Shown: positions 39,701 to 61,577, numbered from the stretch's first letter. The stretch is 64,000 nt of DNA from Blastocladiella emersonii ATCC 22665 (GCA_025594325.1 JANHCV010000008.1:806001-870000); one strand, 5' to 3'. The notes: generated from the sequence alone by a model not told the origin. Made by a program: numbers and translations.

Positions 39701-39726
39701 AGTTCTTTGCGTTTGTTTCCCAGTAA
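24748..39726 (+). CDS. MDN1: Midasin/Rea1 AAA-ATPase, 2 exons (24748-25153, 25220-39726), ~4970 aa
   Basis: Six AAA modules (GITGSGKT, GETGCGKT, GPTSSGKT, GETGCGKT, GSPGVGKT, GPSGSGKT), long linker, D/E-rich region and C-terminal MIDAS/VWA (LLAVDDSLSM...ISDG). The intron restores frame (G+CC ATG). Confidence 0.98.
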
Positions 39727-42903: not shown

Positions 42904-43362
42904 TTACTCCGCGACCTGCTCGTCCTCACCCGCACCGCCCGCCGCCGCAGCGGAGCCCTCCGCCTTCTGCTCCTCGACTGCCCGGCGCGCGTGCACAAAC
43001 AGCTTGCACACCATCCGCTCCATGGTCTCAATCGACTCGGCCTCCTTGGCGGGCAACTCGACCCCGCTTGTCACCTCGCGGATCGTCAGCAGGCACCCGG
43101 ACGCCGCCTGCAGGTGCGGCAGGATCGACATGGCCTCGTCGGCCGTCTCGAGCGTCTCGCCCAGACCGAGCGCCTGGATCGATGCCAGGTGGCCGAGGAG
43201 CTCGGCGAGCGGGCGGGCGTAGATGCGGTCGCCGCCGGCGGAGGAGGGGGGGTTGGCGGTGGGGAGCTGCAAGGGAGTAGTGGACGGCGTCGCGGCAGCA
43301 GCGGCGGGCTTGCGCTGCGGACGCTTCTTGCGCGCGGCGGCACGTTGCGCGTTGAAGCCCAT
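42904..43362 (-). CDS. Family D member 1 (152 aa)
   Basis: MGFNAQRAAARKKRP start and ILPHLQ core. Confidence 0.7.
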   Translation of the reverse strand: MGFNAQRAAARKKRPQRKPAAAAATPSTTPLQLPTANPPSSAGGDRIYARPLAELLGHLASIQALGLGETLETADEAMSILPHLQAASGCLLTIREVTSGVELPAKEAESIETMERMVCKLFVHARRAVEEQKAEGSAAAAGGAGEDEQVAE

Positions 43363-43833: not shown

Positions 43834-43989
43834 TGGTGATGGCCGTGGCCAGATCTCGTTGCCTTTCCGGGTTTCCTAAGCTTGTGAGGAAGATGCGCTG
43901 TCCACAATCGCCAGTATGATCCTGCTCTCAACAAGCGACCGTAAGCACTGATCTACAAGCTTAGAGTATGCAATCTGAACGTTCATTCA

Positions 43990-44442
43990 TTACTCGTCGA
44001 CCTCAACGATCCGCGTCGTATCGTCACTTGCGCCGCGCACTGGAACCGCCCGGCCCTCCACGATGCGGCGGAATTTGGCGATCAGGTAGCGCATCGACCG
44101 CTCCGTGCCGACTAGGTGGCTCAGATCCGGCGGAGGGATGACGGCGAGCGGGTCGTAGTTGTCGCGCAGCTCCCGAAGCTGCTGGATACACCTGGCCGCG
44201 GACTCGAGGTGCGGCAGCAGGGCCGCGGCTTTCTCGAGCGATTCTGCGGCAGTGGCTGGGTCGAGTTGTTCGATGTTGGTCAAGTGAGCATGCAGCTCGC
44301 CGAGCGGGCGCTGAAAGGCCGCAAACGCGGCCGTGTCTTCGAACCGCTGCGGAGGCGTCGCCGGCTTGCCTCGCGCCTGGGTCCCAGGTTTGCTCCGCGG
44401 ACGCTTCTTCTGGGCAGCGGCACGTTGCGCGTTGTAGCCCAT
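43990..44442 (-). CDS. Family D member 2 (150 aa)
   Basis: MGYNAQRAAAQKKRP start, LLPHLE core, ends DDTTRIVEVDE. Confidence 0.75.
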   Translation of the reverse strand: MGYNAQRAAAQKKRPRSKPGTQARGKPATPPQRFEDTAAFAAFQRPLGELHAHLTNIEQLDPATAAESLEKAAALLPHLESAARCIQQLRELRDNYDPLAVIPPPDLSHLVGTERSMRYLIAKFRRIVEGRAVPVRGASDDTTRIVEVDE

Positions 44443-44681
44443 GGTCTTGGTCAAGTGTCGAGGAGGAAGAGGGGTGGCCGAGGGAGGAGAAGCGAGTCTC
44501 GAACACAAGTGTGACGGTCGACTTGACGCACGCCCACGTGTGTGTCGCAGGCCTGGCGCCCTTTCGCCTCGCCTCGCCCATCGGCGGCTCACGAAGTCGC
44601 GTTCTGGTCACCAAGACGACGATATATACAAACGAGACTCTCGTGTCGAAACACTGCAGACCCACCAGCTCGGCCCGCGCG

Positions 44682-45110
44682 TCACGGCTGGTTCTCAATC
44701 CCGGGCTGCTCGCGGCGCAACCTCTCCATGCCGGCCTTGATGTCCTCGATCTGGTCGCGCAGGATCGCCTCGTGCTCGGTGAGCTGAGCCATCTTGGCGC
44801 GGTACACGGCGGCCTGGGCCGCGGTCTCGCGGCGAGGCCGGGTGGCCGCGAGCGTCTCCATGACGACGTGCATCGACGCGAGCGTCGTCTCCATGGGCGG
44901 CAGCGCGGCTGCGATTTGCTGGTAAGTCATGGTGCACGGAGGCTGGTTCGCGGTGGTCGCCCCGATGGCGTCCAGCTGCTGCACCGCGGCCGTCAGCGGG
45001 CCGACGGACTCGCGCAGCACGCGCGTGTGGTTGGCGGCGGGCGCGGCGGTCCGTGGAGCGCGCGGCGGGCGCTTCTTGGTGGCGGCAGCTTTTTGCGCGG
45101 TGTATCCCAT
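44682..45110 (-). CDS. Family D member 3 (142 aa)
   Basis: MGYTAQKAAATKKRP start, LPPME...RPRR...EHEAILR core, strong GC3 bias. Confidence 0.75.
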   Translation of the reverse strand: MGYTAQKAAATKKRPPRAPRTAAPAANHTRVLRESVGPLTAAVQQLDAIGATTANQPPCTMTYQQIAAALPPMETTLASMHVVMETLAATRPRRETAAQAAVYRAKMAQLTEHEAILRDQIEDIKAGMERLRREQPGIENQP

Positions 45111-45221
45111 TGCAGTAGGTCAAGTTGATTCGTGCAGCAAGGAGAGGGAGGGATCGCTCGAGCGGGGCCGGGCGAGGAACGCGCGCGAGCGATCGGCGGC
45201 TGACGCGCGCTGGTCAGGTGA

Positions 45222-45236
45222 GTGTGGCGCAACGCG
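45222..45236 (-). promoter_or_regulatory. Shared upstream motif (gtgtggcgcaacgcg), D3
   Basis: ~112 bp upstream of the ATG at 45110. Confidence 0.55.
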
Positions 45237-45729
45237 ACGCAGAGGCGCGAAGCGACTCGCGCACGCTCCTGCCGCCCCCGCTATGGATGATATGGGCGTC
45301 CAATGGATCATTTGCTGCCTGCAAACATATTTTGGGACCTCGTGACAAGGTAAAATTACGTCGTTTGCAGTCACGGTCAAGCCGCTGCCTTGGCGCGTGG
45401 TGCTCGTGACGGCTCGATCGCCGGCGCCGACTCAACTCGATCCGTGACGCTCAACAATGAAGCGATAGATGTTGCTGCGATGGTGACTGCGGTCCGCGCC
45501 GTGTCGAGCTGAGGCCACTAGATGTGGAGCGTCTGCGCATCGCCGGCCAGGTTGAGTGATGGTGCCACCTGTTTCGAGCGCGGGAGAGTTGAGCGTCGTG
45601 CCATACCTCGCGCCAACGCGTACAAGTAAGATGCCCGTTGCACTCGCACGCCCGAAGAGAGACGCTAGGACAACTGTTCGTTCAGTAATGCAAGTATTCA
45701 GACCAGCGCACGCGCGCACTTTGGTCCGC

Positions 45730-46248
45730 CTATTCAAGCTCCTCAATCCGGTCCTCGGTCGGCTTCCTGCCCGACTCTGCAGCCTGCTGCTTCTCCACCA
45801 GCATCTTGCGAGCCTTCTCGAGAATCAACCCCATGGCCTCATCCTGCTTGCCCACCCGATTGAGATCGTTGATGTGGGCGATCGCCTTCTGCAACGTTGA
45901 GGGACCAGCAATTGAGACTTGGAGGTACAGGTACTTGCGCTGCAAGTGCGAGACAAGGGCCTCGAGGATTGAAATCATCTCGATGAGCTGCTCGGTCGCT
46001 CCACGCGTCGGCAGCGGTTTGCCGTTTGGGAACAGCGCATCCAGCGCGTGCACATGTCGCATCGTGACGGGGTCGGTTTCGCCAATGAAGCCAGGTGTAA
46101 ACCCGTTTGGGTGAGGCGGCAGGGTGGGATCTGTTGATTCAGGTGCTGATGGTGCAGGAGGTGTGTACTTGGATGGCGTCGGTTCGGGGGCGCGCGGGCG
46201 ACGGGCACGTCGCTTGGTCGCTGCAGCCTTTTGCGCACTGTAACCCAT
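45730..46248 (-). CDS. Family D member 4 (172 aa)
   Basis: MGYSAQKAAATKRRARR start, ends TEDRIEELE. Confidence 0.7.
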   Translation of the reverse strand: MGYSAQKAAATKRRARRPRAPEPTPSKYTPPAPSAPESTDPTLPPHPNGFTPGFIGETDPVTMRHVHALDALFPNGKPLPTRGATEQLIEMISILEALVSHLQRKYLYLQVSIAGPSTLQKAIAHINDLNRVGKQDEAMGLILEKARKMLVEKQQAAESGRKPTEDRIEELE

Positions 46249-46480
46249 GGTGATGATACGTGGTTTGCAGAGAGTAGATGAACGAGAGCTGCGGACCTGG
46301 AGGACAAAGGCTCGACTCAATGCTCACGCACTCCTTGAGCGCGAAAACGCGACGAAGTCATGTGGCTGCGCCACTCCTGATGAGCGCGCGGCGCCTCACG
46401 CTCACCGCGCGATGCCGAACCACGGAGTCCAGTTCAGATCACAAGAACGGATATATTTATGTTGAGCTTCGTGCGTCGCA

Positions 46481-46942
46481 TCAAGCCGACGCACCCGCTG
46501 ACGCGTCGCGGCCCTGAAGCAGCCCCGGGTGCTCGCGGTTCACCTGCTCGATGGTCGCCTTGATATGCGCAATCTGGGCACGCAGGTGGGCCTCGCACTC
46601 GGCGACGTGCGCTACCGTTCTCTTGTTTACGAGCGCCTCCGAAGCCGACATGCGCCGCGGCCGGCATGCGGCGTAGGCCTCCATGATCCCAGGCATCGTC
46701 GCCACTGTTGCTTCCATGTGCGGTAGCCCGTCCACTGCTTGTTCGAACGTCATGGAGTCGTGCGGCAGGTGCGTGTTGGCCGAGGACATGGCGTCGAGAA
46801 ACGCTTCGGCAGCCGCGAGCGGGGCAGCCGCCTCCCGCACGTGCAGCGCGGCCGCGGAGCTCGCGTCTGGCGGCGGGGCGGGCCGGAACGAGCGCCGTGG
46901 ACGCTTCTTGGTGGCGGAAGATTTTTGCGCGTTGTATCCCAT
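46481..46942 (-). CDS. Family D member 5 (153 aa)
   Basis: MGYNAQKSSATKKRP start, LPHME...RPRR core; closest to D3. Confidence 0.75.
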   Translation of the reverse strand: MGYNAQKSSATKKRPRRSFRPAPPPDASSAAALHVREAAAPLAAAEAFLDAMSSANTHLPHDSMTFEQAVDGLPHMEATVATMPGIMEAYAACRPRRMSASEALVNKRTVAHVAECEAHLRAQIAHIKATIEQVNREHPGLLQGRDASAGASA

Positions 46943-47040
46943 TGCAGCAGGTGAAGATGATTTACACGGAGAGGAGCGAGCTCGAGCAGGACGAGCTTGG
47001 GAAAACGCGCGATCGGCGACCGACGCGTCGGTCAGGTGAT

Positions 47041-47054
47041 TGTGGCGCAACGCG
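47041..47054 (-). promoter_or_regulatory. Shared upstream motif (tgtggcgcaacgcg), D5
   Basis: ~100 bp upstream of the ATG at 46942. Confidence 0.55.
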
Positions 47055-48366
47055 ACGAATGGGGCTACTCGACTCAACCCGCGCTTTCCCTGGCAGCCAG
47101 TTCAAGAAAGTAAATATCACTTGATGCATTCGCCGCTTCTTGCAAATGCAGCTAGTGATCCGTGGCCGGCGTTGCCTCGCGTCCAGGGGAGAGATCCCGT
47201 CGTTGCGGTCGCTTGGGCGGTCGCTTCATGACGAAGTAATCGCGTCGACTTTGGTCCTCGACTGATCTCGTCCCACCTGGTTTATCTCGGCAGTCATTTT
47301 CAACCGGAGAGAACCTGGACTACTAGAGATGACGTGCGGGCTCGCTGCTGTCGGACGCGTCCTGATATCATGTGGGTGCGGCGTGACGCGGTGGAGACGA
47401 AGATCGCGATGCGAAACGGGCGGCGACTTGGATGCCCGCCGACTTCCTTCTGCTACTTGCCCAACCGTGTTACACCACAGAACTTCATGTAACTCCATGC
47501 AAGCCGCATATCGGGTTCCGAGTAGCGACCTGATAGCTTAACGCAGTGATCGGCTCGCAGTTTTCGCACCGGGAGGCCCGCGTCGCAGCCGCCCGCCGCG
47601 GCGGCGGACTGTCGAGCGCTTCACAAGCATACATTGCTGAACCTTATGACACTGCTACTTGAATCGACTCGCTCCATCGCTTCATTTTAGACTCGCGCCG
47701 GAACTGAGAGCAAAGGACACGTGCAGCATGTACGTCCTGTTGGACTACGTCTTCGGGCCTTTGCGATCCGGACCCGGTTCGCAAGAGTTCTCAGTGGGTA
47801 AGGAGGCATCGAAGTAGCGCTACATACAGAGCCCGCGTCTCGACCGCTCCCACGGTCGCTTTTTCTCGTGCAGCCGCCAAACCGCTGGCGCTCCGCGGTG
47901 TGTAACCAGTCACCGGACTGTGATGATCATCAGCTTTGGTCATCCGCGTTTCCTGGCTTCTTTGTTCGCTTGTTGAACAGCTGTCATCACCATCACACGC
48001 TGCTAGCTGCACCTCGTTCCGATGTACCCCACGCTGCTTGAATGATGCTTCCAAGGCGCATTATCCAGCGCCACCTCGTGCCTCAGTGCTTTGTCGAACG
48101 GGAGACAGCGTGTCCTTGCGTCAGCGCACTGCTCGCAACAGCAAGCGACGCAGGCCGCGAAGCTGTACACTCATCGAACAGGCTTTACTCGCAGAAAGGT
48201 TTACACTTGCTCAAAGATGACGGGAGCGACGGGCACGGCTGCACTTCAGATCTTGCTTCAAAGCGGGTACTCGGATTGATCAATCACAACTGCAGATGCA
48301 TTCAATCACACACTCGCGCGCGCGTGATCGCTACCGCGCGCTTCTCTTCAATGCGCTGTCACCGCC

Positions 48367-48888
48367 TTACACGCGCCCGCGCTGGCGCTGGCGCGCGGCA
48401 AGCGCTTGGCGGGACCGCTCGATCGACTGGCGCGAGGTGCGCTCCTGGAGCAGCAGCTGGTTGAGGCAGTCGGTCAGCGCAAACGCCGTCTCCACGGTCG
48501 CGACCCCGAGCGTCCACGACTCGAGCGTCTGGCGCTTCTGCTGTACGTGCGCGAGCAGAGCCTCCTGGTGTGTGATCAGCACGGCAATGTCCTGGGCGGT
48601 GAGGTTGCGCGGCGCTGCACCGGGCCCAGCGCTGGCCCCAGTGATGGCGTTGATGGCGTTGACGTGGTGCAGGATCACTGGGTCGTTGTCGGCATCGAGT
48701 GCGGCCTCAACGCCGTAGAGCGGACTCGTGGGCAGGGCCGCCGACCATGCGGGCGTGACTGGCGCACAGCCCGGCGGACGAGGACCCACGGCAACGCGGG
48801 CAGCCGATGCGGGCGGAGCCGACTCGGAAGGGCGCGGGCGGCGCGCGCACCGCTTTGCGGATGCATTCTTTTGCGCGTTGAATTCCAT
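48367..48888 (-). CDS. Family D member 6 (173 aa)
   Basis: MEFNAQKNASAKR start; RPPGCAPVTPAWS...LYGVEAALDAD block shared with D10 and D11. Confidence 0.75.
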   Translation of the reverse strand: MEFNAQKNASAKRCARRPRPSESAPPASAARVAVGPRPPGCAPVTPAWSAALPTSPLYGVEAALDADNDPVILHHVNAINAITGASAGPGAAPRNLTAQDIAVLITHQEALLAHVQQKRQTLESWTLGVATVETAFALTDCLNQLLLQERTSRQSIERSRQALAARQRQRGRV

Positions 48889-49005
48889 GGTGTCGATGCG
48901 TTGTTTGTGGTTTGGGTGGCGGAGAGAAGGAATCGAGCGGGTCGCCGATTTCCTCGACAAGTCGGCCGAACGCGGAGTTGACTCACGCGGCTGGCCCACA
49001 CGCGC

Positions 49006-49024
49006 GAGTGTGGCGCAAAACGCG
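49006..49024 (-). promoter_or_regulatory. Shared upstream motif (gagtgtggcgcaaaacgcg), D6
   Basis: ~120 bp upstream of the ATG at 48888. Confidence 0.5.
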
Positions 49025-49099
49025 TTCGGCGATGGGAGTGACGGGAATTGTGGCTGGGCGCGACGCGTCTCATGTCTCGCATCCCCAAGCGACGCTGAC

Positions 49100-49293
49100 G
49101 CGTCGCTGTTCAGAACGGCATCTTTACGAATGGAAGACACAACGCTTCCCTTGTCAACTTTATGCAACGCGTCCGACACCGCTCCAACTTGCTGATTTAC
49201 GACTGGTACCTTTAAGGCTGATAGCGCGACCGCCAGCGTGCTTCGCCAAGTGTGCCGTTAGTAGGCGAAGGCCCTTGCCGGGTTGAAGCCCAT
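49100..49293 (-). pseudogene. Family D 5' remnant (MGFNPARAFAY*)
   Basis: ccaaggccATG context like the ccaagaccATG of D1 and D2; TAA after 11 codons. The 3' extent is approximate. Confidence 0.45.
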
Positions 49294-49933
49294 GGCCTTG
49301 GCCGATTACGATACGTCGGCAACAATGATATCGAGTAGCGCAGCTTCGCGAACGAACGAGCAACACGCTGCTCATCGCGCGAGCGCGATCAAGCAGGAAG
49401 CGCGTGCTACGCGTGTTTATTTGGTGGTTTGATCCTCGTGCGAGCGCATCGCGACATACGAATGAGATCAACCGATCCGAGTCCCGCATGTTGGTTGCTG
49501 GGATCGGGCTGGATCGCTGTCCAACAAATTCGGGACAGGGAGGAGCAGCTCTAAGTGATGGAGCACACCCGCGCCTGTCGTGCAAGGCCGCGCTGCAGGC
49601 GTTGAGTACTTTCTCCAATAAATTCAAGCCATCTCGGTTACGTTTTTAGCGCAAGCGAAGGTCTCAGTCGACTACGAGATGGGCGGACGAAACCGGTGCC
49701 ATTGATGGAGCAAAATTACCTGTTTGTCCCGAGCCTGATTTGAGGAGAAGACTACCCTGCGAATCCCTGCCCGCTTCAACGTAGGTGAAGGACGAGACAA
49801 TCATGCATGTTACAGTGTGCTATCCATTACAAACAACAAGACCATGACGTGACACGGGAACGGCTTGCGACGGATGCAGAAGGTGTGCGCGTCACGAGCA
49901 CCATAAAGTCAGGGATTCGACTTAGTTGATCTC

Positions 49934-50383
49934 CTAGATGCGGCTACTGTCGCCGTCAGGGCTGGAGCCATCTCGGAGCGGGAAATCCCGCTCGGCCACC
50001 CGTCGGCGGAGCTCGACGAGGTTCTTGCGTATTTCCTCCTCGTTCTTATCATCTTCGATAAAAGCAGTGGCGAAACGGGGGTCGAAGCGTGCCAACTTAA
50101 CGCGGATTTGCCGCATGGCCTGTGCATGTGCCAGCGTGCCCTCGAGGTGTGGAATAAGTGCGGCAACGTCCTCCAGCTTCAAGTCCCGAGCATCTTCGGG
50201 CATGAGCTCTCGGAACGCTGCGTGGTGGAGGCTCACCTCGGGGCTCATTCGAAAGAAGACCCCGGCGGCACGGTCAATGCATGCTTCGGCGGGGCCACCA
50301 GGCGGCATCGGCGCAGACTTGCTTGCGGGCTTGCGCCGAGCACGCTTCTTAGCGGCAGCTGCCTTTTGCATGTTGTTATTCAT
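49934..50383 (-). CDS. Family D member 7 (149 aa); C-terminal motif cut by a TAG
   Basis: MNNNMQKAAAAKKRARR start, LIPHLE core; the tail reads SRI*EIN*. Confidence 0.7.
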   Translation of the reverse strand: MNNNMQKAAAAKKRARRKPASKSAPMPPGGPAEACIDRAAGVFFRMSPEVSLHHAAFRELMPEDARDLKLEDVAALIPHLEGTLAHAQAMRQIRVKLARFDPRFATAFIEDDKNEEEIRKNLVELRRRVAERDFPLRDGSSPDGDSSRI

Positions 50384-50748
50384 GGCCTCCAGTCAGGAGG
50401 TGCGAGTGTGGAAGTCGGCGGTCGGGAGCTGGGAGCGCCCGCGAACAGGTCGGCAAAGAGCTGAAACGACTGCCCACGAAGCACGTGTGTGGCGCAGGCG
50501 CGGGCGCGGGCGCGACCACGACGACGCGCGTCGACGCGCGAGACACCGTACTCGGCGTTCTCCAATGGAGCGCGCTCATTCTAGGAGCGCGGATCACTGC
50601 CGTGATTAAAAATGCGTTTAATATAGTCACGCTTCACAACTGCTTGCAGAACGCGCAAGCCCTCGCTTACAGCAAGTCGCTGGCTCATGGTCACGCAAGA
50701 AAATCGAGCGAAAACGCCGACTGCATGTATCCCAAACATTGAGCCATA

Positions 50749-51137
50749 CTAAACTTCCGTGATCCGCTCGTCTTTTGGCTCTACGGTGCCAGCAGCGACG
50801 GCGCGCTCACGCTGACGTTCCACAAGCGATTTTTGAAGCGCAGCGCCTTTTGAAGCGCAACGACCATCGATTCCGCAGACTGTTGCTGCACCAGCGTCTC
50901 GTTCAGGGCCGCGGTCAGCGCAAGCGTTTCCTCCATCGTCGACTTTAAGTGCACCCCTGATCCCGGGTTCCACGCCAAGAGCGCCTCGTGCTTCTGCTGG
51001 GCGAGATCATCAGCTTCCAAATCACTCGAGCTTGTGATCCGTCCATCTTTGGGCTCGGCGTCGGCCGCCTCCGCGCGCTTGCGCATTCGTATCGCTAGCG
51101 TCACTTGATAATGTTTGAGAGCCGACTGCGTGGGCAT
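50749..51137 (-). pseudogene. Two adjacent family D 3' remnants, both frameshifted
   Basis: Removing a 17-nt duplication restores VALQKSLVERQRE...EPKDERITEV*. Restoring one G at ~51031 gives EPKDGRITELE*. Confidence 0.6.
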
Positions 51138-51446
51138 GTTTCAAGCAACATCTAGTGTAAGGCTGCGAGCCAACAAGACCACTTTGCTCACCATCGAGTC
51201 CCAGTCCGTCGCGGTTGGCGGAGTCCACACGATAATAGTTTACCTCTTGCGCAGTGAGTGGCGTAGTACACGGTAGCCCGAGTTCGCTTGTTCAACCAGC
51301 GGGGCTCGGGCCAGCAACTAAGCGACCTGATAATCGCAGTGCCATCTGGAGCTCACATGCTTCGCCTCTCGCCCTCAAGATTGAAAGTACGTCAAGGCCT
51401 TACATTTCGTGACACAAACGGACAGAAGGCTCGCGCAGCAGCAAAG

Positions 51447-51935
51447 TTACTCGAGTTCGAGGATGCGGCCCTCGTCACTAGACCCAGCACTGCCGCCCTG
51501 CTCGCCCTCCTTCTCGAGTCGCGCCGCCAGCTCCTTGCGGAGCCGCTCGACGTTGGCGCGCATCTCCGCTTCCTTGGCCGCCGTTGTGGCCAGGTACGCG
51601 TTGTACTCGACCAAATCGGCTGCCGACAGGTTCCGCGGCCGCATGTCGCGGAACGCCTGCTGCATGGCCTGCATGTGCTTCACCACGCCCTCGTAGTGCG
51701 GGATCACCTGGACAAGTTCTTCCGTCGTCGCATGGCGGTCGCGGGGCGTGATGGCGCGGAGGGCCTTGAGGTGCTGCTCCATGCCGTGGGTCGCCACGTC
51801 GATGGGCGAAATGGCGGACGTATGGTTCGACAAAACCGTGGTCGCGGCCGTCGCCTTGGCCGCGGGAGTAGCAGCGGTATTGTTGCGGCGGCCACGCTTC
51901 TTGGCGGCGGCGGCTTTCTGCGCGCTGTAGCCCAT
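51447..51935 (-). CDS. Family D member 8 (162 aa)
   Basis: MGYSAQKAAAAKKRGRR start, VIPHYE...MRPR core, ends DEGRILELE. Confidence 0.75.
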   Translation of the reverse strand: MGYSAQKAAAAKKRGRRNNTAATPAAKATAATTVLSNHTSAISPIDVATHGMEQHLKALRAITPRDRHATTEELVQVIPHYEGVVKHMQAMQQAFRDMRPRNLSAADLVEYNAYLATTAAKEAEMRANVERLRKELAARLEKEGEQGGSAGSSDEGRILELE

Positions 51936-52865
51936 GTTTCGGATGGATTGCACCAAGTGATCTACGACAGCACTGTCAAGTGGGGCGGAGGGGCGAGAGG
52001 AAGAGGAAGCCCGACGCTGGCACGGCGGAAGTCGCTGTGCGAATTTTCGGCGCTGGCTGAGGATCACGCGAGTGGCGCAGCCACGCCCGATCGCGTCTGC
52101 TGCTTGCTGTGCGCGACCAAGGTGTCTGCCTTGTTCGTACTGGGCGTTGGTACACGTAGCCGCCTGGCACAGCAAAATCATCAATAATCTTTGTTTCCGA
52201 TGCTGGAAACTCCATCCAAGTTGTCAGGATTTCAGGGCCGTTCTCGCACGTTTGAAGTTTCGCGTTTCCTGCCGCCAAAGATTGTTGTGTACAAGCACCT
52301 CTGCTTTCAAGCGTCCGTCGTCGATCGACGGCTCACCCCCGCAAAGGTTCACATCACGCATAGAATTTCTCATGCGAGACTCCTCACTTGTCTTGGATTT
52401 TAGCCACGGCAACCAACAGCTTGTGAGCTCGCGTCGTCACAAACTGATGGCTGTACTGATCGCCCAACGTTCGCGGGTTTCGCCTTTCATTGACACCTTT
52501 CAAGCGAGCATCAGGTTCATTCCACACGTGCTTAGTAAAACGGATCACCTTTGCGTCCCAAGAAACGCTGCTTGTGGGAGTTGGCGCCAAAACGCGCTTG
52601 GGATTCCGCTCTTTCGCAGCTCATTTTGCAAGTCCCTCATTGCTGCTGCGTGAAAACACGCGTCCTGATCAGCAGTCAGCATGTCCTGTGGCTGTGCCGT
52701 GCGTTCCGAACGTGGTGGTGCTGAAGTTGTGGCGTAACGCGTCCAATATGAAAGGGCACCGATCGCTTGGTAAAGTAATATCTTGAGAGCGAGTAGACGC
52801 TGAGCACCTTGCGAGCAATCAGTTTTAGCTGAACCGCATGTATCTCCGAGGCACGAATCGCGCGC

Positions 52866-53348
52866 TCACTGCTCATCATCGCCACACTCCTCAATGCTAC
52901 CGCCGCCGCCAGTGGAACCGGCACCAGCAGCAGCCGCGGACCCAGCGCCGCGACCAAAGACGCGGTACATCATCTCGAGGTTGGCGCGCATCAAAGCCTC
53001 CTGCTCGATGAGGTCCGCGAGGGACGCGTTGAACTGGGCCACTTCGGCGGCCGTGGCGCGCTGTGGGCGGATCGTATACATCTCGTGCCGCACACGCTGG
53101 ATGTTTGTCAGCATCGCCTCGACGTGCGTAATTACCTGGAACGGGTCGGCTTGAGGACCGCCGAGAACGCTCTGCATGACGAGGGAGCGGATTCTGTCAA
53201 AGTTGTGCTCAAATTCGTCGCTGGCCGCGTCCATGGTTGCAAGCGCCTTGCGAACCTCAGGCGCAGAGGTCGAGACTTGCGAGCGGACCGCCGGCCGGCG
53301 CCGCGCGCGCTTCTTGTTGGCGGCAGCCTTTTGCGCGTTGTATCCCAT
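52866..53348 (-). CDS. Family D member 9 (160 aa)
   Basis: MGYNAQKAAANKKRARR start, ITHVE...IRPQRAT core, ends SIEECGDDEQ. Confidence 0.75.
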   Translation of the reverse strand: MGYNAQKAAANKKRARRRPAVRSQVSTSAPEVRKALATMDAASDEFEHNFDRIRSLVMQSVLGGPQADPFQVITHVEAMLTNIQRVRHEMYTIRPQRATAAEVAQFNASLADLIEQEALMRANLEMMYRVFGRGAGSAAAAGAGSTGGGGSIEECGDDEQ

Positions 53349-53447
53349 GGTTTCACTGGATCTTGAATAATGAAGGGGAGCGATAGTCGCGAGGAGACCC
53401 TCTCGCGCGAAAGGCGCGTCCCTTCGAGGGTGGGAGAAGGGACACGT

Positions 53448-53462
53448 GAGTGGCGCAACGCG
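53448..53462 (-). promoter_or_regulatory. Shared upstream motif (gagtggcgcaacgcg), D9
   Basis: 100 bp upstream of the ATG at 53348. Confidence 0.55.
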
Positions 53463-53918
53463 CGACACTTTCTCCACGCGCCACTTCGCATCGGCCGTTC
53501 GATCACAAAGCGACGCGAATCCACTGCTAGGGCGCCGTTCATACCCGGCTAGCTCTCGTGTAAATGCATGGCCGTCGTGCGGTCGCCTAGGTTTGTGCGA
53601 AAATGGAGTGAGTTCAGCTCACCTTGCGGCATCAGTGGACGCGATAATAGATGTAACCTTGAGCGGTACACGATGATGTTGGTGTTCCTATTAACGTGAT
53701 CGATGCATATGCTGTTACCAGCGATAGAGAGTGTATTGAGCTGTACTACACGCGACTCGCAACAGACGCAACGGGGTTCCACACAACCTTGCGCAGTTCA
53801 TCAAGCGCTGAGCGCCGCCGGACCTTCTCGTCCGCGACGTTGTCGATGCATGCATTGTAACGCAACATGTCGGCGGCTGTCGCGCACACGGCATGTCTGG
53901 CCAGTCTACGATGCGTTA

Positions 53919-54639
53919 TTATTCAAAATCTCGCGTAAAACGAGCCGTTACCTCGTCACGCTCGTTGGCCAAAGTAAAGAAGTGAGTGTAGCTCGTGTTG
54001 ACCGTGTGTTTTTGACGGCGCCGCGTCATACTTGTGAAGCACGCGAAGAAGCGACTCGGGCAGGCTTGTTGCGTCGAAGCGTGCTCACAGTTGGAAGGCA
54101 CGGCGAGACGGTTGGTGCGCGCATTGAGGAGATCCGCCAATGCATCGAAGTGCGACAGCCTGTCGCTCGGAGCACCCGCAACCCGCTACGCGCCCTTGAA
54201 ATGACGGAAGGCAAGTTAAAAAACCACGAGCCGGTTCGAAAATGGGCTTGGCGCGGCCAAGCGCATTGCCGAGCGAGTCCAATAGTACGAGTATTGGTGT
54301 TTAGGTACAAACTGTCGCGATTCGGGCGTGCCAAAGTATAGGGCTGACATCAACGCACAGGCACGATTCAAGCGGTCTACGCGGCTCTTCTCGCAAGGAT
54401 GCGTGTTGCTGAAGCTAGCGCAAGGTAAGGTTGGGAGCGGCCCCAATCGTCGACCGGTCGCATGTGTCTGCTGCTCGCTTCGGCCACTGGTGAGGTCAGA
54501 CTTGCGCGTCGCACGGCACCGTCTGAGCCCCTTCATCCCACATCGCAACGTAGGATCGCGGAGCGGGTTGGACCGCGGCAAGCCGTTGCTGCAAGACTTT
54601 CATGTAGTTTGCATCAGGTTCCTTTCTTTCGCGGGACAT
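53919..54639 (-). pseudogene. Possible unrelated small or degraded gene, divergent from family C copy 2
   Basis: ccaccATG at 54639 (MSRERKEPDANYMKVLQQRL) with the shared motif at 54712-54720. Downstream frames are interrupted. Confidence 0.25.
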
Positions 54640-54775
54640 GGTGGGAGACTGCAGGGAGACAAAGCGTCGTGCGGGTCGGGCGGCGGGATGACGCGCGGGG
54701 AAGCGAATCAAGTGTGGCGCCGCCGGCGTGATCGGTGCTCTCTTCCTCAAACATGTATCGTTCTCGCTCTTTGCA

Positions 54776-56392
54776 ATGAATACACGCAGATCAACTCCAT
54801 GCAATGCACTTCTTGCTATATCGCCGCCCGATCCTGAGCCCGACCTGGGGCCGGCCGTCGCCGCGATCGATCGCGTCACCGCCGCGGGGAATCTCGGGCA
54901 CTTGCCCGCCGTCGACCTTGCCGTCCTTGAGCAAGGGGCACTGTGCAACCTCATGTCGCGCCGCATCGGCTTGATTCGCGCTGCCTTGCGCCCGCGTATT
55001 GCGCCGCCGGGCGAGCCTATCTTGGCCGAGCCGATCGTGGAAGCGTCCCTTGGCCTGTTTCACGCCCGTGCAGCGTACACTGGGGTTGCGCAGCTTGCTG
55101 TCCATGACGCTGCGGTGCACCCTACGCATGTACGGGAGCTTGAACCGCCGCCTCGCGTTGAGTATCCGCCCCAAACCGTTGATGGTCCGCAGACCGCAGA
55201 CCTGTTCGAGACTCGTGTTCCCGCGCGCCCGCTCGCAGTCGAGACCGCCCCGCTTCATTTCTCGCCCGAACCGCGTGCTGCTCCGGAGTCTTTGACGCTT
55301 CCAGCTACGAAATCCGACTCGACTCGCACGCACTCCCAATCACTACCCGCAGCTTGCGCGACACTCGCAGCCATGATCCGCGCTGTTGAGCGAGGCGATA
55401 CCGGAACGGTGACGGCCACCGTCGACTTTGCCGAGGTCGCCCGCGCCGCCGAATCCATGCTCAAGATCCTCGCCAACGGGGTCGCACCAGGCAAGCTCGC
55501 TGACGCGTTGATTCGCTCACACGACCGCGTTCCGCCCGCCATTTACCGCGTCTTCGCGATCGCCCTGTCGCCCGAGATGCCCGACACCGCAGCACGGACC
55601 GCCTGTGTTTCCGTCTTTTCATATCCGCGCGCCTTCTGGATCAAGTTTTACATAAAGCCCACGCGCGGCGAGCATCTCCGCGTCAAGCGGCTCGTCGCGG
55701 ACGCGACCAAGGCCGTGGGCTTGAATGAATTCGATTACGCGGATCGCACGAGGCTGCCGCACATTAAGGCGCTGTTCGTTGACCGGCTCAACTGGGTCGA
55801 TCCCGAGTCGCTTGCCCAGCAGATCAACGATCCCGCGTGTACGCTCGAGAATCTTTTGAAGATTGCCGCGTACTCGTACGCGCCAAACGCGCCGTCGATT
55901 CCTGCCCGTAGCTCGGCGCCATGGGGGCCCGCCCACGCTGCTGTTGAAACGCACGCGGTTGACCACGTACGCCCGTCAACTGCGGACAACTTGACCCACC
56001 TCCACGCCCATCGGCAGCAGGCCATTGGGTGCACTTACTGCGCCGTCCTCAAGAGCCACCGCATCCCTCCGCACACGGAGACTGACTGCGTGCGGCTCTT
56101 TGACGCGCAGGAGATGGGAACTCGCATTGGCAAGGCGGCCGCTGCGATGGCGCAGCCGTTCAAGGTCGTTCCGCTCCACGGCGGGCACGAGGACGCGGCG
56201 CTGGTGACGCTCGCGACGCAATTGGGGTCCGACCATGCCAATCGGTTTGTGGAACTCGAGGACCGGCGGGCACTCGCTGCGCTGCACGCGCTGATGCGGA
56301 TCCCGCACGACGCAACGCGGCACGACCGGATCCGGCGGATCTTTGCGTGGGCGCACCACTCTCAGCAGAAGCAGATGATGCAGTCTACTTAG
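54776..56392 (+). CDS. Family C copy 2: Gag-like, CxxC-x10-H-x4-C
   Basis: Within the 554-aa ORF 54728..56392. EQGALCNLMSRR, VPPAIYRVF...EMPD, LPHIKALFVDRL and CTYC...HTETDC (56030-56089). Confidence 0.6.
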   Translation: MNTRRSTPCNALLAISPPDPEPDLGPAVAAIDRVTAAGNLGHLPAVDLAVLEQGALCNLMSRRIGLIRAALRPRIAPPGEPILAEPIVEASLGLFHARAAYTGVAQLAVHDAAVHPTHVRELEPPPRVEYPPQTVDGPQTADLFETRVPARPLAVETAPLHFSPEPRAAPESLTLPATKSDSTRTHSQSLPAACATLAAMIRAVERGDTGTVTATVDFAEVARAAESMLKILANGVAPGKLADALIRSHDRVPPAIYRVFAIALSPEMPDTAARTACVSVFSYPRAFWIKFYIKPTRGEHLRVKRLVADATKAVGLNEFDYADRTRLPHIKALFVDRLNWVDPESLAQQINDPACTLENLLKIAAYSYAPNAPSIPARSSAPWGPAHAAVETHAVDHVRPSTADNLTHLHAHRQQAIGCTYCAVLKSHRIPPHTETDCVRLFDAQEMGTRIGKAAAAMAQPFKVVPLHGGHEDAALVTLATQLGSDHANRFVELEDRRALAALHALMRIPHDATRHDRIRRIFAWAHHSQQKQMMQST

Positions 56393-56585
56393 AACTAGAT
56401 CCATCGTGCTCGTTTTGTTTGCAAGGTAGGGTGCGATCGGGTTGAGATTCACCTCATTCATCGCTCCTTCGCGCGTCTTCATGATGTTCAAGCGCAACGG
56501 TCGATGTATCCTAACATGAACACGCGCCTGCTCCATCGACGCCACGCGCGCACCTCCTCCTTCTCCTCGGCGCGCATCCAGCAGC

Positions 56586-57134
56586 CTACGCGCGCCCGCG
56601 CTGGCGCTGCCGCGCGGCCAGGAACGCGCGCGTCCGCTCGAGGCCCTCGCTCATCTCCCGCTCCTCGTAGACCAGCTGGTTGAGGCACTCGGTCTGCGCG
56701 AGCACCGCCTCGATGGTCGGGACGGGCGGCGTCCACGCCTCGAGCGTCTTGCGCTTCTGCTGCACGTGCGCGAGCAGCGCCTCGCTGTGCGACATCAGCG
56801 TGGCGGCGACGTCGCTCGGGGCGGGGAGCCGCGCCGCCGAACCGCGTCCAGCGCTGGCCTCACTGATGGCGTTGATCGCCTTGACGTGGTACAGGACGAC
56901 AGGGTCGTGGTCAGCATCGAGTGCGGCCTCAACACCGTACAGCGGGCTCGTAGGCAGCGCCGCCGACCACGCGGGCGTCACAGGCGCGCAGCCCGGTGGA
57001 CGAGGACCCGCGGCAGCGCGGGCAGCATCCGACGCGGATGGAGCCGGCGCGGGGTCGGTCGACGCGGCCGCGCGCGGAGGAAGGCGACGCGTGCGCTTCT
57101 TGGTCGATGCGTTCTTTTGCGCGTTGAAGCCCAT
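56586..57134 (-). CDS. Family D member 10 (182 aa)
   Basis: MGFNAQKNASTKKRTRR start; close paralog of D6. Confidence 0.75.
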   Translation of the reverse strand: MGFNAQKNASTKKRTRRLPPRAAASTDPAPAPSASDAARAAAGPRPPGCAPVTPAWSAALPTSPLYGVEAALDADHDPVVLYHVKAINAISEASAGRGSAARLPAPSDVAATLMSHSEALLAHVQQKRKTLEAWTPPVPTIEAVLAQTECLNQLVYEEREMSEGLERTRAFLAARQRQRGRA

Positions 57135-57153
57135 GGTGTCGATGCGTCGTCGT

Positions 57154-57222
57154 TTGTGTGGTTTGGATGATGGGGAGAGAGGGAGCTGATTGTGTGGTTT
57201 GGATGATGGGGAGAGAGGGAGC
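57154..57222. repeat. 33-bp direct duplication (36-bp period) in the D10 5' region
   Basis: ttgtgtggtttggatgatggggagagagggagc x2. Confidence 0.9.
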
Positions 57223-57330
57223 AGAGCGCGGGCTCCGGCCGGTGTTTGAAGGAGTCACGAACGGTCGGCGCCGGCGTGGGCGGTGCTCCCTCCCTCACAA
57301 CATGAAGGATCGCCGCTTGCCGCGATGGGG

Positions 57331-57560
57331 GCTCCATGCAACCTGCTTCTTGCTCTATTCCAGGTTGATCTTGAGGCCGGGCTGGCTCCGGCCGACGTTG
57401 TGCTCGATCGCGTCACGGCGGCACGGATCCGCGGCGAGTTGTTGACGCAGCGAGCTAGCCGTTCTTGAGCAGGGCATGCCTCGTACCCGTCTCGCGCGTC
57501 GTTCCGGCCTGGGCGAGGCTGGTTCGCGCTCGTACATCGCACCACGCACATCTGTGTCAC
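57331..57560 (+). pseudogene. Family C 5' fragment
   Basis: PCNLLLAL...LDRVTAA...VLEQG...RR.GL...IAP matches the N-terminus of copy 2 (PCNALLAI...IDRVTAA...VLEQG...RRIGL...IAP), with a frameshift. Confidence 0.65.
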
Positions 57561-57998
57561 CTGAGTCGGTCGTTGAGGTGACATCTAGAGAGCCGGCCCG
57601 CTTGAACGGCGCCCAGCCCCACGGGCTCTGTCGCAACCGCGCACACGTCCTCGGTGGTGGCCGCTCTACCACTCGCCCTCACACGCGACCTCGGGCGACA
57701 TTGAGGCACAAAGCACGCTTGTTACGATCTTGAGCATCCGTGCGCTGGTCCAACTCTTTCACCCCGACGAAGCGCTCGTTCCCATATGACTGCCGTGCTC
57801 TCAATCTTTCATGTGTGGCAGTCATCGCTCGCGGCAAGCGTTCCGACCTGCAAGCGCTCGCGTCCGCATGGTCGGATCTCACAGCTCAGAGAACAGCCCT
57901 TTGCTTCAACAACGCAACGTCGAACTATTCGATCACACACTGTCGTGCACACTCGGACGCGGACGCACGTCCCACGATCTCGATGATCGGCCGGCAAC

Positions 57999-58430
57999 CT
58001 ACCCGCGCCCGCCCGTCATAGCCGCCAGCGCGCGGCGCGCCGTCTCGATCCCCTGTCGCATGGCGTTCTCGTGGCGCAACGTGTGGTTGAGGGCGTCCGT
58101 CAGCGCGATCATCGCCTGGACCGGGTCCACGTTCCCGGTCGGCCGCCACGACTCGAGCGTCTGCCGCTTGCGCTGCACGTGCGCGAGCAGGGCCTCCTGG
58201 TGCGTGATCAAGGAGCGGCAGTCTTGGGCCGTCATACGGCGCGGGGTCGGCGGGTTCGCCGAGGCACCGGTGATGGCGTTGATGGCGTTGACGTGCTGCA
58301 GGATTACCGGGTCGTTGTCGGCGTCCAGCGCGGCCTCGACGCCGTACAGCGGGCTGGTCGGCAGGATCGCCGACCACGCGGGCGTCACGGGCGCGCAGCC
58401 AGGCGGGCGTTGGGCGGAGGGACCGGGCAT
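57999..58430 (-). CDS. Family D member 11 (143 aa), lacking the N-terminal NAQK/basic motif
   Basis: The ATG context (gcatcaacaccATG) matches D6/D10 but runs straight into the RPPGCAP block. Confidence 0.65.
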   Translation of the reverse strand: MPGPSAQRPPGCAPVTPAWSAILPTSPLYGVEAALDADNDPVILQHVNAINAITGASANPPTPRRMTAQDCRSLITHQEALLAHVQRKRQTLESWRPTGNVDPVQAMIALTDALNHTLRHENAMRQGIETARRALAAMTGGRG

Positions 58431-58581
58431 GGTGTTGATGCATTGCGAGTAGAGTGGGTGAGGGGCAGGAGAGAAGAAGCTTCAACGGGGTGCTCGAGCG
58501 AGTTTCGCCCAACCGATCGAAGACGTCGTCGTCGACTCACACAGCTGACTCACACAGCTGACCCACGCGCGAGTGGCGCTG

Positions 58582-58653
58582 GGGCTTGACGACGGGGGTG
58601 GCAGGATTGGCAGCCGGGCTTGACGACGGGGGTGACAGGATTGGCAGCCGGGC
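58582..58653. repeat. 34-bp tandem duplication with one mismatch, upstream of D11
   Basis: gggcttgacgacgggggtg(g/a)caggattggcagcc x2. Confidence 0.9.
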
Positions 58654-59141
58654 GCGACGCGTCTCATGTCTCGCGCTCTCGCGGGACGCCGGCACTTCAC
58701 GGCGCATTCGGTTAACTATTAAGTAAGCCCTTCGATTCAGTTCGCAGACTCGATTCACGACACCGGCCGCCGTGACCCTCAACTCGCTTCATAGCCAGCA
58801 GGAGCTACATAATGTGAGCATGCGATATGAGCTTGCATAGGATTGCTATCCTCGTCTGGCTCTTGAGTACTCGGTGATGGGGCCATCATGGCCGCGATTG
58901 AGACGGCACTCCACGAAACTGCAACATTTCTCAGCATCCCTCTACTTGTCGTGTGATTCGCACTCTGATGAGCCCATTCGTGCGGTTTTCGCCCAGCTCG
59001 ATGAGCCTGTGCGGCGGGAGAGTGATTTACACTTGCAGCACTGGACCAGGACCTGCGAGTACACGTTCACGTCTCGCTTCGGAGTCGATAAGGTTTGGTT
59101 TCGAACGAAAACGAGAGGTATTTATGGTGAGGTAGCGGACC

Positions 59142-59675
59142 TTACTCGAGCTCAACAAACCGGCCGTCGCTTGACCCCGCAACACCCGAACGCGGAATCG
59201 GGAACGGCGCGCCGCGCTCGACAAAGATACGCTCGAGCTCGTCAACTGCGCGATTCGCGTCCTCCTTGGGTCCGAACATCGCGCTCACGAACGTGCGGAG
59301 CGTATCGAGGATGGAGTTGAGCGTCGCCTCGTTCCGGGTAAGTCGCGCGAGCGATGCGTGGTACTTGGCCATGTCGGCCGCGGTCGTACGCTGCGGGCGC
59401 ATCGAGCCCATCTCCTGGCGCATGCGCTGGACGTCGGCCAGCATCCGCTCGAGATTTGACATCGCCGTGAGCGCCTCGGCGGGGTCCGCACCTTTCGTGC
59501 ACCGCTCGGCCATGGCGAGGAACTCATTGGCCTGCTGCTCCAAGTCGCTCTTGACGGCGTCGGCGGCGGATAGCGTCTCGCGGAGCTGCGGCGCCGACGA
59601 GGCCGAGGCCCTGGCGGCCGACCAGCGCTTGGGGCGCTTCTTGGTGGTGGACGCTTTCTTCGGATCGAATCCCAT
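59142..59675 (-). CDS. Family D member 12 (177 aa)
   Basis: MGFDPKKASTTKKRPKR start, ends SDGRFVELE. Confidence 0.75.
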   Translation of the reverse strand: MGFDPKKASTTKKRPKRWSAARASASSAPQLRETLSAADAVKSDLEQQANEFLAMAERCTKGADPAEALTAMSNLERMLADVQRMRQEMGSMRPQRTTAADMAKYHASLARLTRNEATLNSILDTLRTFVSAMFGPKEDANRAVDELERIFVERGAPFPIPRSGVAGSSDGRFVELE

Positions 59676-59791
59676 GGTTGCCTCAAGTTGCATCAAGTGT
59701 GAGCGAGCGAAGCAGCCGTTCGGGATTGCGATGACACTGCGCGAGAGAGGGCGGGTCGAGTCGCGCGTATGCGCGATCGAAGCGCGCACGT

Positions 59792-59806
59792 GAGTGGCGG
59801 AACGCG
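59792..59806 (-). promoter_or_regulatory. Shared upstream motif variant (gagtggcggaacgcg), D12
   Basis: ~117 bp upstream of the ATG at 59675. Confidence 0.5.
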
Positions 59807-59974
59807 ACCTTCAGGGCACTCCCGACAGCTGTCAAGTGCAAGGGTTTCTCGCAGGACTGGCTGTTACACTGGACAAGGACCCGCGGTCGAGCGTCCGTGT
59901 CAAGTTTCGGTGTCAAACGAGTTTTTTGTCGAACGTAGACGGGGATTTATTCATGACTGATGAGAAAGAGGTCC

Positions 59975-60508
59975 TTACTCGAGCTCAACGAAGCGGCCAT
60001 CGATTGACCCAGCACCACCCGAACGCGGAATCGGGAACGGCTCGCCGCGCTCGACAAAGATGCGCTCGAGCTCGTCAACTGCGCGATTCGCGTCCTCCTT
60101 GGGTCCGAACATCGCGCTCACGAACGTGCGGAGCATATCGAGGTTGGATTTGAGCATGGCCTCGTACGCAGCAAGATGCGCGAGCGATGCGCGGTACTTG
60201 GCCATGTCGGCCGCGGTCGCACGCTGCGGGCGGATCGCGCCCGCCCCCTGGCGCATGAGCTGGGCGTCGGCCAGCATCCCCTCGAGATTCGACATGGCCG
60301 TGAGTGCCTCGGTGGGGTCCGCGCCGTCCCTGCACCGCTCGACCAGGGCGAGGAACTCCGTGGCCCGCTGCTTCAGATCGGTGTGCGCGGCGTCGGCGGC
60401 GGAAAACGTCTCGCGGATTTGCGGCGCCGACGGGGCCGATGCCCTGGCTGCCGACCAGCGCTTGGGGCGCTTCTTGGTGGTGGACGCTTTCTTCGGATCG
60501 AATCCCAT
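59975..60508 (-). CDS. Family D member 13 (177 aa), tandem duplicate of D12
   Basis: Same length and termini as D12; ends IDGRFVELE. Confidence 0.75.
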   Translation of the reverse strand: MGFDPKKASTTKKRPKRWSAARASAPSAPQIRETFSAADAAHTDLKQRATEFLALVERCRDGADPTEALTAMSNLEGMLADAQLMRQGAGAIRPQRATAADMAKYRASLAHLAAYEAMLKSNLDMLRTFVSAMFGPKEDANRAVDELERIFVERGEPFPIPRSGGAGSIDGRFVELE

Positions 60509-60634
60509 GATTTAGTTCCGTTGCATCAAGTCTGGGCTCTTGACGAAGACGTTTGGGTTGCAATGGCACTGCGCGAGGGAGAGCGGGTCGAATCGCGGGT
60601 CGGCGCTGCGTCAACGCGTTCGAAGCGCACACGT

Positions 60635-60649
60635 GAGTGGCGGAACGCG
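60635..60649 (-). promoter_or_regulatory. Shared upstream motif variant (gagtggcggaacgcg), D13
   Basis: ~127 bp upstream of the ATG at 60508. Confidence 0.5.
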
Positions 60650-61025
60650 GGGCTCCGCGCGAGCAGTCCTCGAAGCAGCAGCAACGCATGGCACGGCAAC
60701 TCCGAGCTCAGCAACACACCCGTCCGCCGTTTAAGTTAGCACCAGCGGAGAGTTCACGCGAAGTTGAGCGCGCTCGAACGCTTCAAACGCACGATTGAGC
60801 AGGTCTGCGAGGGGCTCGGAGGAAAGCGAAATCTGCGTGCATCGACTGCAAGTCGCCGTCATTCGAGTGGCGACGCGGCTCGTCCAACCTTTGTCATGCA
60901 TGACATATGCACGCGTGCGTTGTTCCGCGTCAACCACTGCTGTCCACTCATCTAATCCTCAAACAGTGCGCCCGGGATCGCCACGATATGAAATGTATTG
61001 CAAGCCTACTCGAGCGCAGCGCAGC

Positions 61026-61577
61026 TCACTCGATCTCAACAATGCGATTGTCGTCGCCAGTCATCTCCGCACCAGCGCTCAGGACAGCAACAGAAACAGC
61101 GCCAGCCGCGAGCCTCTCCGCTTCGTCATTCTCCTTGCGCATGGCCATCCGGGACTTGATGCGCGCAATGAGGATGTTCAACTGCTCCTCCTGGTGCGCG
61201 AACTTGGCCAGGCCCGCGTCGTAATTGGCCATGCTAGTCCTCGACGGCTTGTGGGCGAGGAGCGTCTGTCGCAGCGCGCGCAGTTCCGCCGCCGCGGCTT
61301 CCATGTGCGGCAGCTCTGCAACCTTCTGATCGAGATTCGAGTCGCTGTGACGGACGCAGCGCTCGCGAGTGGCGACTAGGGCCGTCATGTGGTCCTTGGT
61401 GCGGTCGATGGCCGCTATCACAGCCCCAAACTCGTCAAAGGGGCCCGTGACAAGGCCCGCCGTCACCACCAGTGCCCCGCTTGAAGCCAAGCCAGACGCT
61501 GGTCCCGCCCCGGCATGCGCGGTGCGCCGCGCCCGCTGCTTCTTCTTGGCCGCGAGTTTCAGTGCATTGGATCCCAT
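61026..61577 (-). CDS. Family D member 14 (183 aa)
   Basis: MGSNALKLAAKKKQRARR start, LPHME core, ends DDNRIVEIE. Confidence 0.75.
   Translation of the reverse strand: MGSNALKLAAKKKQRARRTAHAGAGPASGLASSGALVVTAGLVTGPFDEFGAVIAAIDRTKDHMTALVATRERCVRHSDSNLDQKVAELPHMEAAAAELRALRQTLLAHKPSRTSMANYDAGLAKFAHQEEQLNILIARIKSRMAMRKENDEAERLAAGAVSVAVLSAGAEMTGDDNRIVEIE

Follow-up and report, generated by a model that had tools for sequence, protein, structure and literature searches.

Short C-terminal labels carried by unrelated proteins, of which EEVD, KDEL and SKL are familiar examples, usually mark a dedicated recognition pathway. Here we analyse a 64,000-nucleotide stretch of the Blastocladiella emersonii ATCC 22665 genome (hereafter the window), which corresponds to positions 806001-870000 of contig C20 in an assembly of 32.65 Mb and 21 contigs, and which contains an array of small paralogous genes, family D, many of whose products finish on a short peptide of the form R-[IF]-x-E-[LIV]-[ED](E). 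The published assembly of this strain likewise comprises 21 contigs (PMC9730499). The same peptide core closes the members of a second, unrelated family, here called X, and on balance we favour the view, as read from the sequences, that the tail is a selected, modular C-terminal docking peptide through which the two private families, unrelated as they are, would be connected to a common reader.

The closest described systems are the EEVD tails of the chaperones and the EEVD-like ligands of carboxylate-clamp tetratricopeptide repeat (TPR) domains. The clamp takes a C-terminal Asp and, less well, a Glu, and the ligand is anchored by Asp(0) and Val(-1); non-chaperone ligands include Tom20 (DDVE), Hsp104 (DDLD) and Rpn13 (DMSLD) (PMC6212638). 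PP5 is bound by ELP1 through LSLLD, with Leu favoured at P2 and P5 (PMC11259706), and CHIP is bound by CHIC2 (10.1101/2023.07.17.549407). In these EEVD-like ligands the terminal Asp anchors the peptide, and its mutation abolishes binding (PMC6212638, PMC11259706, 10.1101/2023.07.17.549407). Numbered in the same way, with 0 for the residue after the aliphatic one, the tails described here resemble EEVD ligands in that they lie at the extreme C-terminus on a disordered linker and end on an acidic residue, with position -1 aliphatic, -2 occupied by Glu and -4 hydrophobic, and they share with the organism's own Hsp90 tail, SRMEEVD, an Arg at -5. They differ from them in that the D tail is mostly Glu-terminated, in that the ending of the X tail can be variable, doubled, absent or extended, and in that the invariant positions are R(-5) and E(-2) instead of the terminal Asp. 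A more distant parallel is offered by KDEL/HDEL and by the peroxisomal targeting signal 1 (PTS1), -SKL, which are also very short end peptides, occur on proteins of the same organism that are not related to each other, and presumably have a single receptor. However, their sequence is another one, they are used proteome-wide and not by two private families, and the D and X proteins lack a signal peptide and have basic N-termini that look like nuclear localisation signals (NLS).

Family D is represented in the window by 13 intact genes for proteins of 142-183 aa, which were delimited by a motif scan and all lie on the minus strand between positions 42904 and 61577 (Table 1), together with one N-terminally truncated member (57999-58430) and two remnants (50749-51137). 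The intact members share the N-terminus MG(Y/F)NAQKAAAxKKRxRR, are 23-38% identical to D8 and can be aligned with it along their entire length. The tail stands at the end of six of the 13 intact genes and is retained by the two remnants. A genome-wide profile search added further members at about 948, 1005, 1008 and 1033 kb of C20 and on contig C7, so that across the genome 12 of 19 intact D members end in R-[IFY]-[VEL]-E-[LVI], extended by one or two residues, the six tails outside the window reading SRYVELE, GRFVELE, GRFVELQ, SRIVELD, GRIVELE and DRIEELD. All the D tails and remnants quoted in a first-pass annotation, which was made from the window sequence by a model, are present as it gave them, and the stop-broken tail of D7 adds a further case. 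Several database gene models also terminate at the tails, namely P0001, P0002 and P0006 on the family D side and P0017-P0023 in family X.

The conservation of the D tail goes far beyond chance. Paralogues that bear it can be only 17-30% identical and lie 140-180 kb apart or on another contig, and among the 12 tail-bearing proteins the identity is 73% over the five-residue core, 30% over the whole protein and 20% over the ten residues upstream of the core. The codons of the core vary between copies (CGG/CGC for Arg, ATC/ATT for Ile, GTT/GTG/GTC for Val, GAG/GAA for Glu and CTC/CTT for Leu), the stop codon may be TAA, TAG or TGA, and the 3' flanks cannot be aligned from one copy to another. Because codons and stops differ and the 3' flanks are unrelated, selection acts on the tail peptide and not on the DNA or RNA that encodes it.

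The first-pass annotation had presented the tail as a property of family D, a restriction that has to be abandoned since the same core ends an unrelated family. Family X comprises at least 45 copies on C19, C20, C7, C21, C6 and C17, with proteins of roughly 1100-1200 aa, a fixed N-terminus (MKQKK[GNP]K...) and a DUF4470 domain close to it (PF14737, E = 3e-12). At least 44 of these copies are closed by the core D-x-R-I-V-E-[LIV]. Arg(-5) is found in 43 of 44 X tails and Glu(-2) in 42 of 44; pooled with those of family D, the figures are 55 of 56 and 54 of 56, which makes these two the invariant positions of the motif. What follows the core is far less uniform. Among all 44 X tails it is a single D or E in 20, DD or DE in eight, nothing in four and something else in 12, and among the 27 copies which were found by homology and not by a stop-anchored pattern the corresponding numbers are three, eight, four and 12, the remaining suffixes in this set being A, N, Q, K, DR, DC, NDS, DDYDFC and a 17-residue extension.

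Counts over the whole genome gave a consistent picture. Sites that code for R-[IF]-x-E-phi-[DE] followed by a stop number 31, against six in a reversed control, and most of them lie outside the D genes. When the stop was not required, D-x-R-I-V-E-phi-[DE] occurred 23 times, against once in the reversed control; 22 of these 23 sites are ends of D or X proteins that were read directly, and the 23rd (C19, 455624) was placed by its location in an X array. Within the genome the motif is confined to C-termini and to families D and X, and it is independent of protein family. Comparison of the two families with hhalign gave no relationship (a probability of 0.1% for the whole families and 9.6% for a possible shared 3' module in the D12 subgroup), and on these values we rejected both a common ancestry of D and X and a shared 3' module.

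Structure prediction suggests how the motif is presented. In an AlphaFold2 model of D8, built on an 18-member alignment, residues 1-43 are disordered, residues 44-147 form a three-helix bundle with a predicted local distance difference test (pLDDT) score mostly above 90, and residues 148-162 have no secondary structure at a pLDDT of about 60, so that linker and tail are predicted to be disordered. This bears out the architecture put forward at the outset, in which a variable folded core is followed by a flexible G/A/S linker and a conserved end peptide, a layout that the alignment shows as well. For family X, an AlphaFold2 model of the last 330 residues has a folded alpha/beta domain at residues 51-276, and its last 50 residues are disordered with a pLDDT below 50. 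The motif is therefore presented on a disordered segment in the models of both D8 and X. We also considered docking of the tail in cis, which is seen in neither model. The X domain contains an internal, invariant G-x-R-[VI]-[VI]-E-[LF] (G126, R128 and E131) with a predicted beta-strand at 129-135, which resembles the X tail.

Both families are lineage-specific, being found only in Blastocladiella emersonii. For family D, a hidden Markov model search of 1.84 billion representatives and a word search of 5.8 billion proteins returned only proteins of the same genome and unrelated repetitive helical proteins, and a feature search of the ESM Atlas gave nothing usable. No D protein matched Pfam above the cut-off, and Foldseek matches of D8 in the PDB were limited to three-helix bundles of a generic kind (spectrin repeat, MIT, syntaxin Habc) at E values of 0.1 or worse. 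Searches with family X found only B. emersonii proteins, its C-terminal region alone had no match, and the C-terminal domain had no structural match by Foldseek in the PDB. A literature search for the tail strings retrieved unrelated words only.

Taken at face value, the motif can be written as [DE/x]-x-R-[I/F/L/Y]-x-E-[L/I/V], usually followed by 0-2 mostly acidic residues before the stop, and we propose that the disordered linker would present it as a docking peptide to a single common partner. Since the unrelated family X ends in the same plug, both families would be wired to one socket, into which D and X would fit alike. On this view the D proteins would be small adaptors or competitors in which a disordered, basic and NLS-like N-terminus is followed by a three-helix bundle that evolves fast and then by a flexible linker that ends in the plug. 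What the reader recognises in this peptide is most likely Arg(-5) and Glu(-2) together with the two hydrophobic residues, with the peptide extended or in a short helix close to the chain end, and a fixed-register clamp on a terminal Asp carboxylate is probably not how it works. As to what this reader might be, it is possible, though we are inclined to doubt it, that the system is a private plug and socket, with a dedicated reader of its own, distinct from TPR clamps, SUMO and Atg8 (or with the X domain itself in that role), in which the D proteins would act as decoys or adaptors competing with some 45 X proteins. Among the named candidates for the partner the TPR clamp comes first, if tentatively, and the conservation pattern fits it only in part.

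Several observations weigh against a docking peptide with one shared reader. The tail is a trait of 12 of the 19 intact members and not of the whole family; five intact members of the window (D1, D3, D5, D6 and D10) and the truncated D11 lack it, and the tail must therefore be dispensable for some paralogues. In family X, decay is evident in some of the copies that have odd suffixes, so the variability of the suffix may partly be noise and not tolerance. Moreover, the shared reader is deduced from the shared motif alone, and the D and X tails could have converged on two different readers.

A first alternative is the one with which the first-pass annotation had identified the tail, that of chaperone-tail mimicry. 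Here the tail would bind carboxylate-clamp TPR domains (Hop/Sti1, PP5, CHIP, Tom70, Sgt and others) as an EEVD-like ligand, and TPR co-chaperones would be recruited or titrated by D and X with no need of the chaperones themselves; in the first-pass annotation, the variable core of the D proteins would select the targets. We consider this reading unlikely. Its formal side has held up. The organism's own Hsp70 and Hsp90 end in PTIEEVD and SRMEEVD, with which the tail agrees at R(-5), I/F(-4), E(-2), L/I/V(-1) and D/E(0), and RIEEID, RIEELD and RIVELD match RMEEVD by residue class at each position, Arg(-5) included. L, I or V occupies position -1 in all 12 D tails and in 43 of the 44 from family X, and I, F, Y, L or V occupies position -4 equally often. 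Exactly one acidic residue follows the aliphatic one in 10 of 12 D tails, most of the long annotated X copies finish in ...RIVELD or ...RIEEID, the genome encodes a complete Hop with TPR1, TPR2A and TPR2B, and the published non-chaperone ligands of the clamp provide a precedent. What does not fit is the anchor, for the terminal Asp with its free carboxylate corresponds to the least conserved part of the tail. The D tails end in E in eight of 12 cases, in D in two, in DE in one and in Q in one. The register with one residue after the aliphatic position is kept in 10 of 12 D tails but in 20 of 44 X tails, and only three of the 27 homology-derived X copies have the EEVD register. The invariant R(-5) and E(-2), on the other hand, are tolerant positions of EEVD peptides. 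Near the arrays, no match to TPR_1 exceeded the family cut-off on C20, C7 or C19, and one weak match lies nearby at C21:1693953. Prediction of a complex between residues 255-525 of the organism's own Hop (TPR2A-TPR2B) and the last 30 residues of D14 gave 0.12 against a mark of 0.34, and the tool returned no answer, a result that weighs neither way.

Other known peptide classes capture parts of the pattern. A SUMO-interacting motif (SIM) has the form psi-psi-x-psi with an acidic flank, and a tail of this kind would make D and X nuclear proteins that bind to SUMO itself or to partners carrying it. I-V-E-L, I-V-E-I and I-I-E-L, preceded by DD and followed by D, DD or DE, agree with that form, both families open with a K/R-rich NLS-like stretch, and a SIM core ([VI][VI]x[VIL] or [VI]x[VI][VI]) with its acidic flank is present in 36 of 44 X tails, which have I at -4 and V or I at -3. 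As a SIM needs no fixed distance to the chain end and is tolerant downstream, the variable X suffix would be explained. The same core is found in only five of 12 D tails, however, where the F/Y variants (5/12) and the I-E-E-L variants misfit psi-psi-x-psi; an invariant Arg directly ahead of the core would be unusual, and all copies are strictly terminal although a SIM does not require this, which together make this reading decidedly unlikely. An Atg8-interacting motif (AIM, or LC3-interacting region, LIR) has the form [W/F/Y]-x-x-[L/I/V] with acidic or Ser flanks, and a clathrin box has the form L-phi-x-phi-[DE]. Some such peptides are found at the extreme C-terminus, and the Theta-x-x-Gamma spacing and acidic flanks of the tail are alike. 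F-V-E-L and Y-V-E-L after S-S-D-G in the D12 subgroup would suit an AIM, and L-V-E-L-D in three X copies a clathrin box. Yet the key first position is mostly Ile (7/12 D, 39/44 X); it is aromatic in five of 12 D and none of 44 X tails, and Leu in none of 12 D and three of 44 X tails, so that the defining residue of either motif is absent from the great majority of tails, and we hold both to be very improbable. A further reading that we regard as improbable would have the tail pair with another tail or with the internal G-x-R-V-V-E-L strand of X, such that D caps or regulates X. That the motif is confined to D and X, that the two share islands on C7 and C20, and that the internal strand is invariant and tail-like would all suit such pairing, but the likeness extends over five residues and may be due to chance, and both tails are undocked in the AlphaFold2 models. 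Finally, the tail could be functionless and merely carried along by recent duplication or gene conversion. D12 and D13 and the pairs on C7 are indeed recent duplicates, but a passive origin is barely credible and we disfavour it, given that the tail has been kept across paralogues of 17-30% identity while the adjoining linker was scrambled, that codons differ between copies, and that it is common to the non-homologous family X; nor did the comparison of codons and 3' flanks reveal a mobile 3' DNA module of conserved nucleotide sequence that would encode the tails.

Table 1. Family D genes and remnants in the window (positions are counted from its first nucleotide)
Feature	Position	Strand	Length (aa)	C-terminus and remarks
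D1	42904-43362	-	152	Intact; acidic end GEDEQVAE, without R-phi-x-E-phi core
D2	43990-44442	-	150	Tail TTRIVEVDE, core followed by two acidic residues
D3	44682-45110	-	142	Family N-terminus and core present, tail absent (end QPGIENQP)
D4	45730-46248	-	172	Tail EDRIEELE
D5	46481-46942	-	153	Tail absent (end DASAGASA)
D6	48367-48888	-	173	Tail absent (end RQRQRGRV); groups with D10 and D11
D7	49934-50383 (feature row 49922-50383)	-	149	In-frame TAG inside the tail: SRI-TAG-EIN-stop
Remnant ORF (open reading frame)	50749-50973	-		Decayed tail ...KDERITEV; overlaps the second remnant ORF
Remnant ORF	50781-51137	-		...KDGRITSSSDLE; decayed tail KDGRIT...LE, out of frame
D8	51447-51935	-	162	Tail EGRILELE; member modelled by AlphaFold2
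D9	52866-53348	-	160	Gly/Ala linker, divergent acidic end SIEECGDDEQ
D10	56586-57134	-	182	Tail absent (end RQRQRGRA)
D11	57999-58430	-		N-terminally truncated, D6/D10 subgroup (gene model P0012); tail absent
D12	59142-59675	-	177	Tail SDGRFVELE
D13	59975-60508	-	177	Tail IDGRFVELE; codons unlike those of D12 (CGC/CGG, TTC/TTT)
D14	61026-61577	-	183	Tail DDNRIVEIE; last 30 residues used in complex prediction

A few features of the array and its surroundings deserve mention in their own right. The database gene model P0006 (238 aa; window 45730-46942, minus strand) fuses D5 and D4 via a predicted intron, which is probably a mis-annotation because each of the two is a complete family member alone. 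An ATACA or TGTATATA-like element recurs 20-40 nt 3' of the D stop codons (for example at 43955-43985 and 61000-61020) in flanks that are otherwise unrelated, and it may be a polyadenylation signal. At the other end of the proteins, the D N-termini open with Met-Gly and an aromatic residue at position 3, adjoined by a KKRxRR that resembles a nuclear localisation signal; for N-myristoylation, an aromatic residue at position 3 is disfavoured. On C7, near-identical D-like and X copies are found in opposite orientation (510639-511016 (+) and 622567-622944 (-), 544830 and 721739, 834934 and 871491), which points to a large inverted segmental duplication, and the twin D copies differ at their end, VELE in one and VELQ in the other.

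The islands of D and X also hold a third expanded family, of 'Gag-like' ORFs, represented in the window at 54728-56392 (+) and 61976-63637 (+). This family has at least 70 scored copies (from 247 candidates), almost all of them on C20, and its ORFs have no Pfam match above the cut-off. Contig C20 thus looks like a nursery of private gene families. Elsewhere in the window, midasin (MDN1; 25222-39726, plus strand) is encoded without introns in one ORF of 4834 aa, within a stretch of 70% G+C. As for the chaperones of this organism, the genome encodes BiP and a Grp94-type Hsp90 of the endoplasmic reticulum, both HDEL-ended (C21, about 27-29 kb, and C15, about 95-97 kb), and its Hsp70 genes carry short introns. 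The arrays on one strand and the intronless midasin had raised the suspicion of a trypanosomatid source, which was dropped in view of these introns and because a search for a spliced leader gave no match.

In this early-diverging fungus, some 55 genes from two private families carry a label that has been kept under selection while its surroundings diverged. Were its reader a TPR co-chaperone, no larger set of Hsp90-tail mimics encoded by a genome would be known, and expanding gene families would then seem to tap the chaperone network or titrate it. Were the reader something else, D and X would define a new motif-reader pair that ties two orphan, rapidly expanding families into one system. In either case, two orphan families that had so far been without annotation become directly testable.

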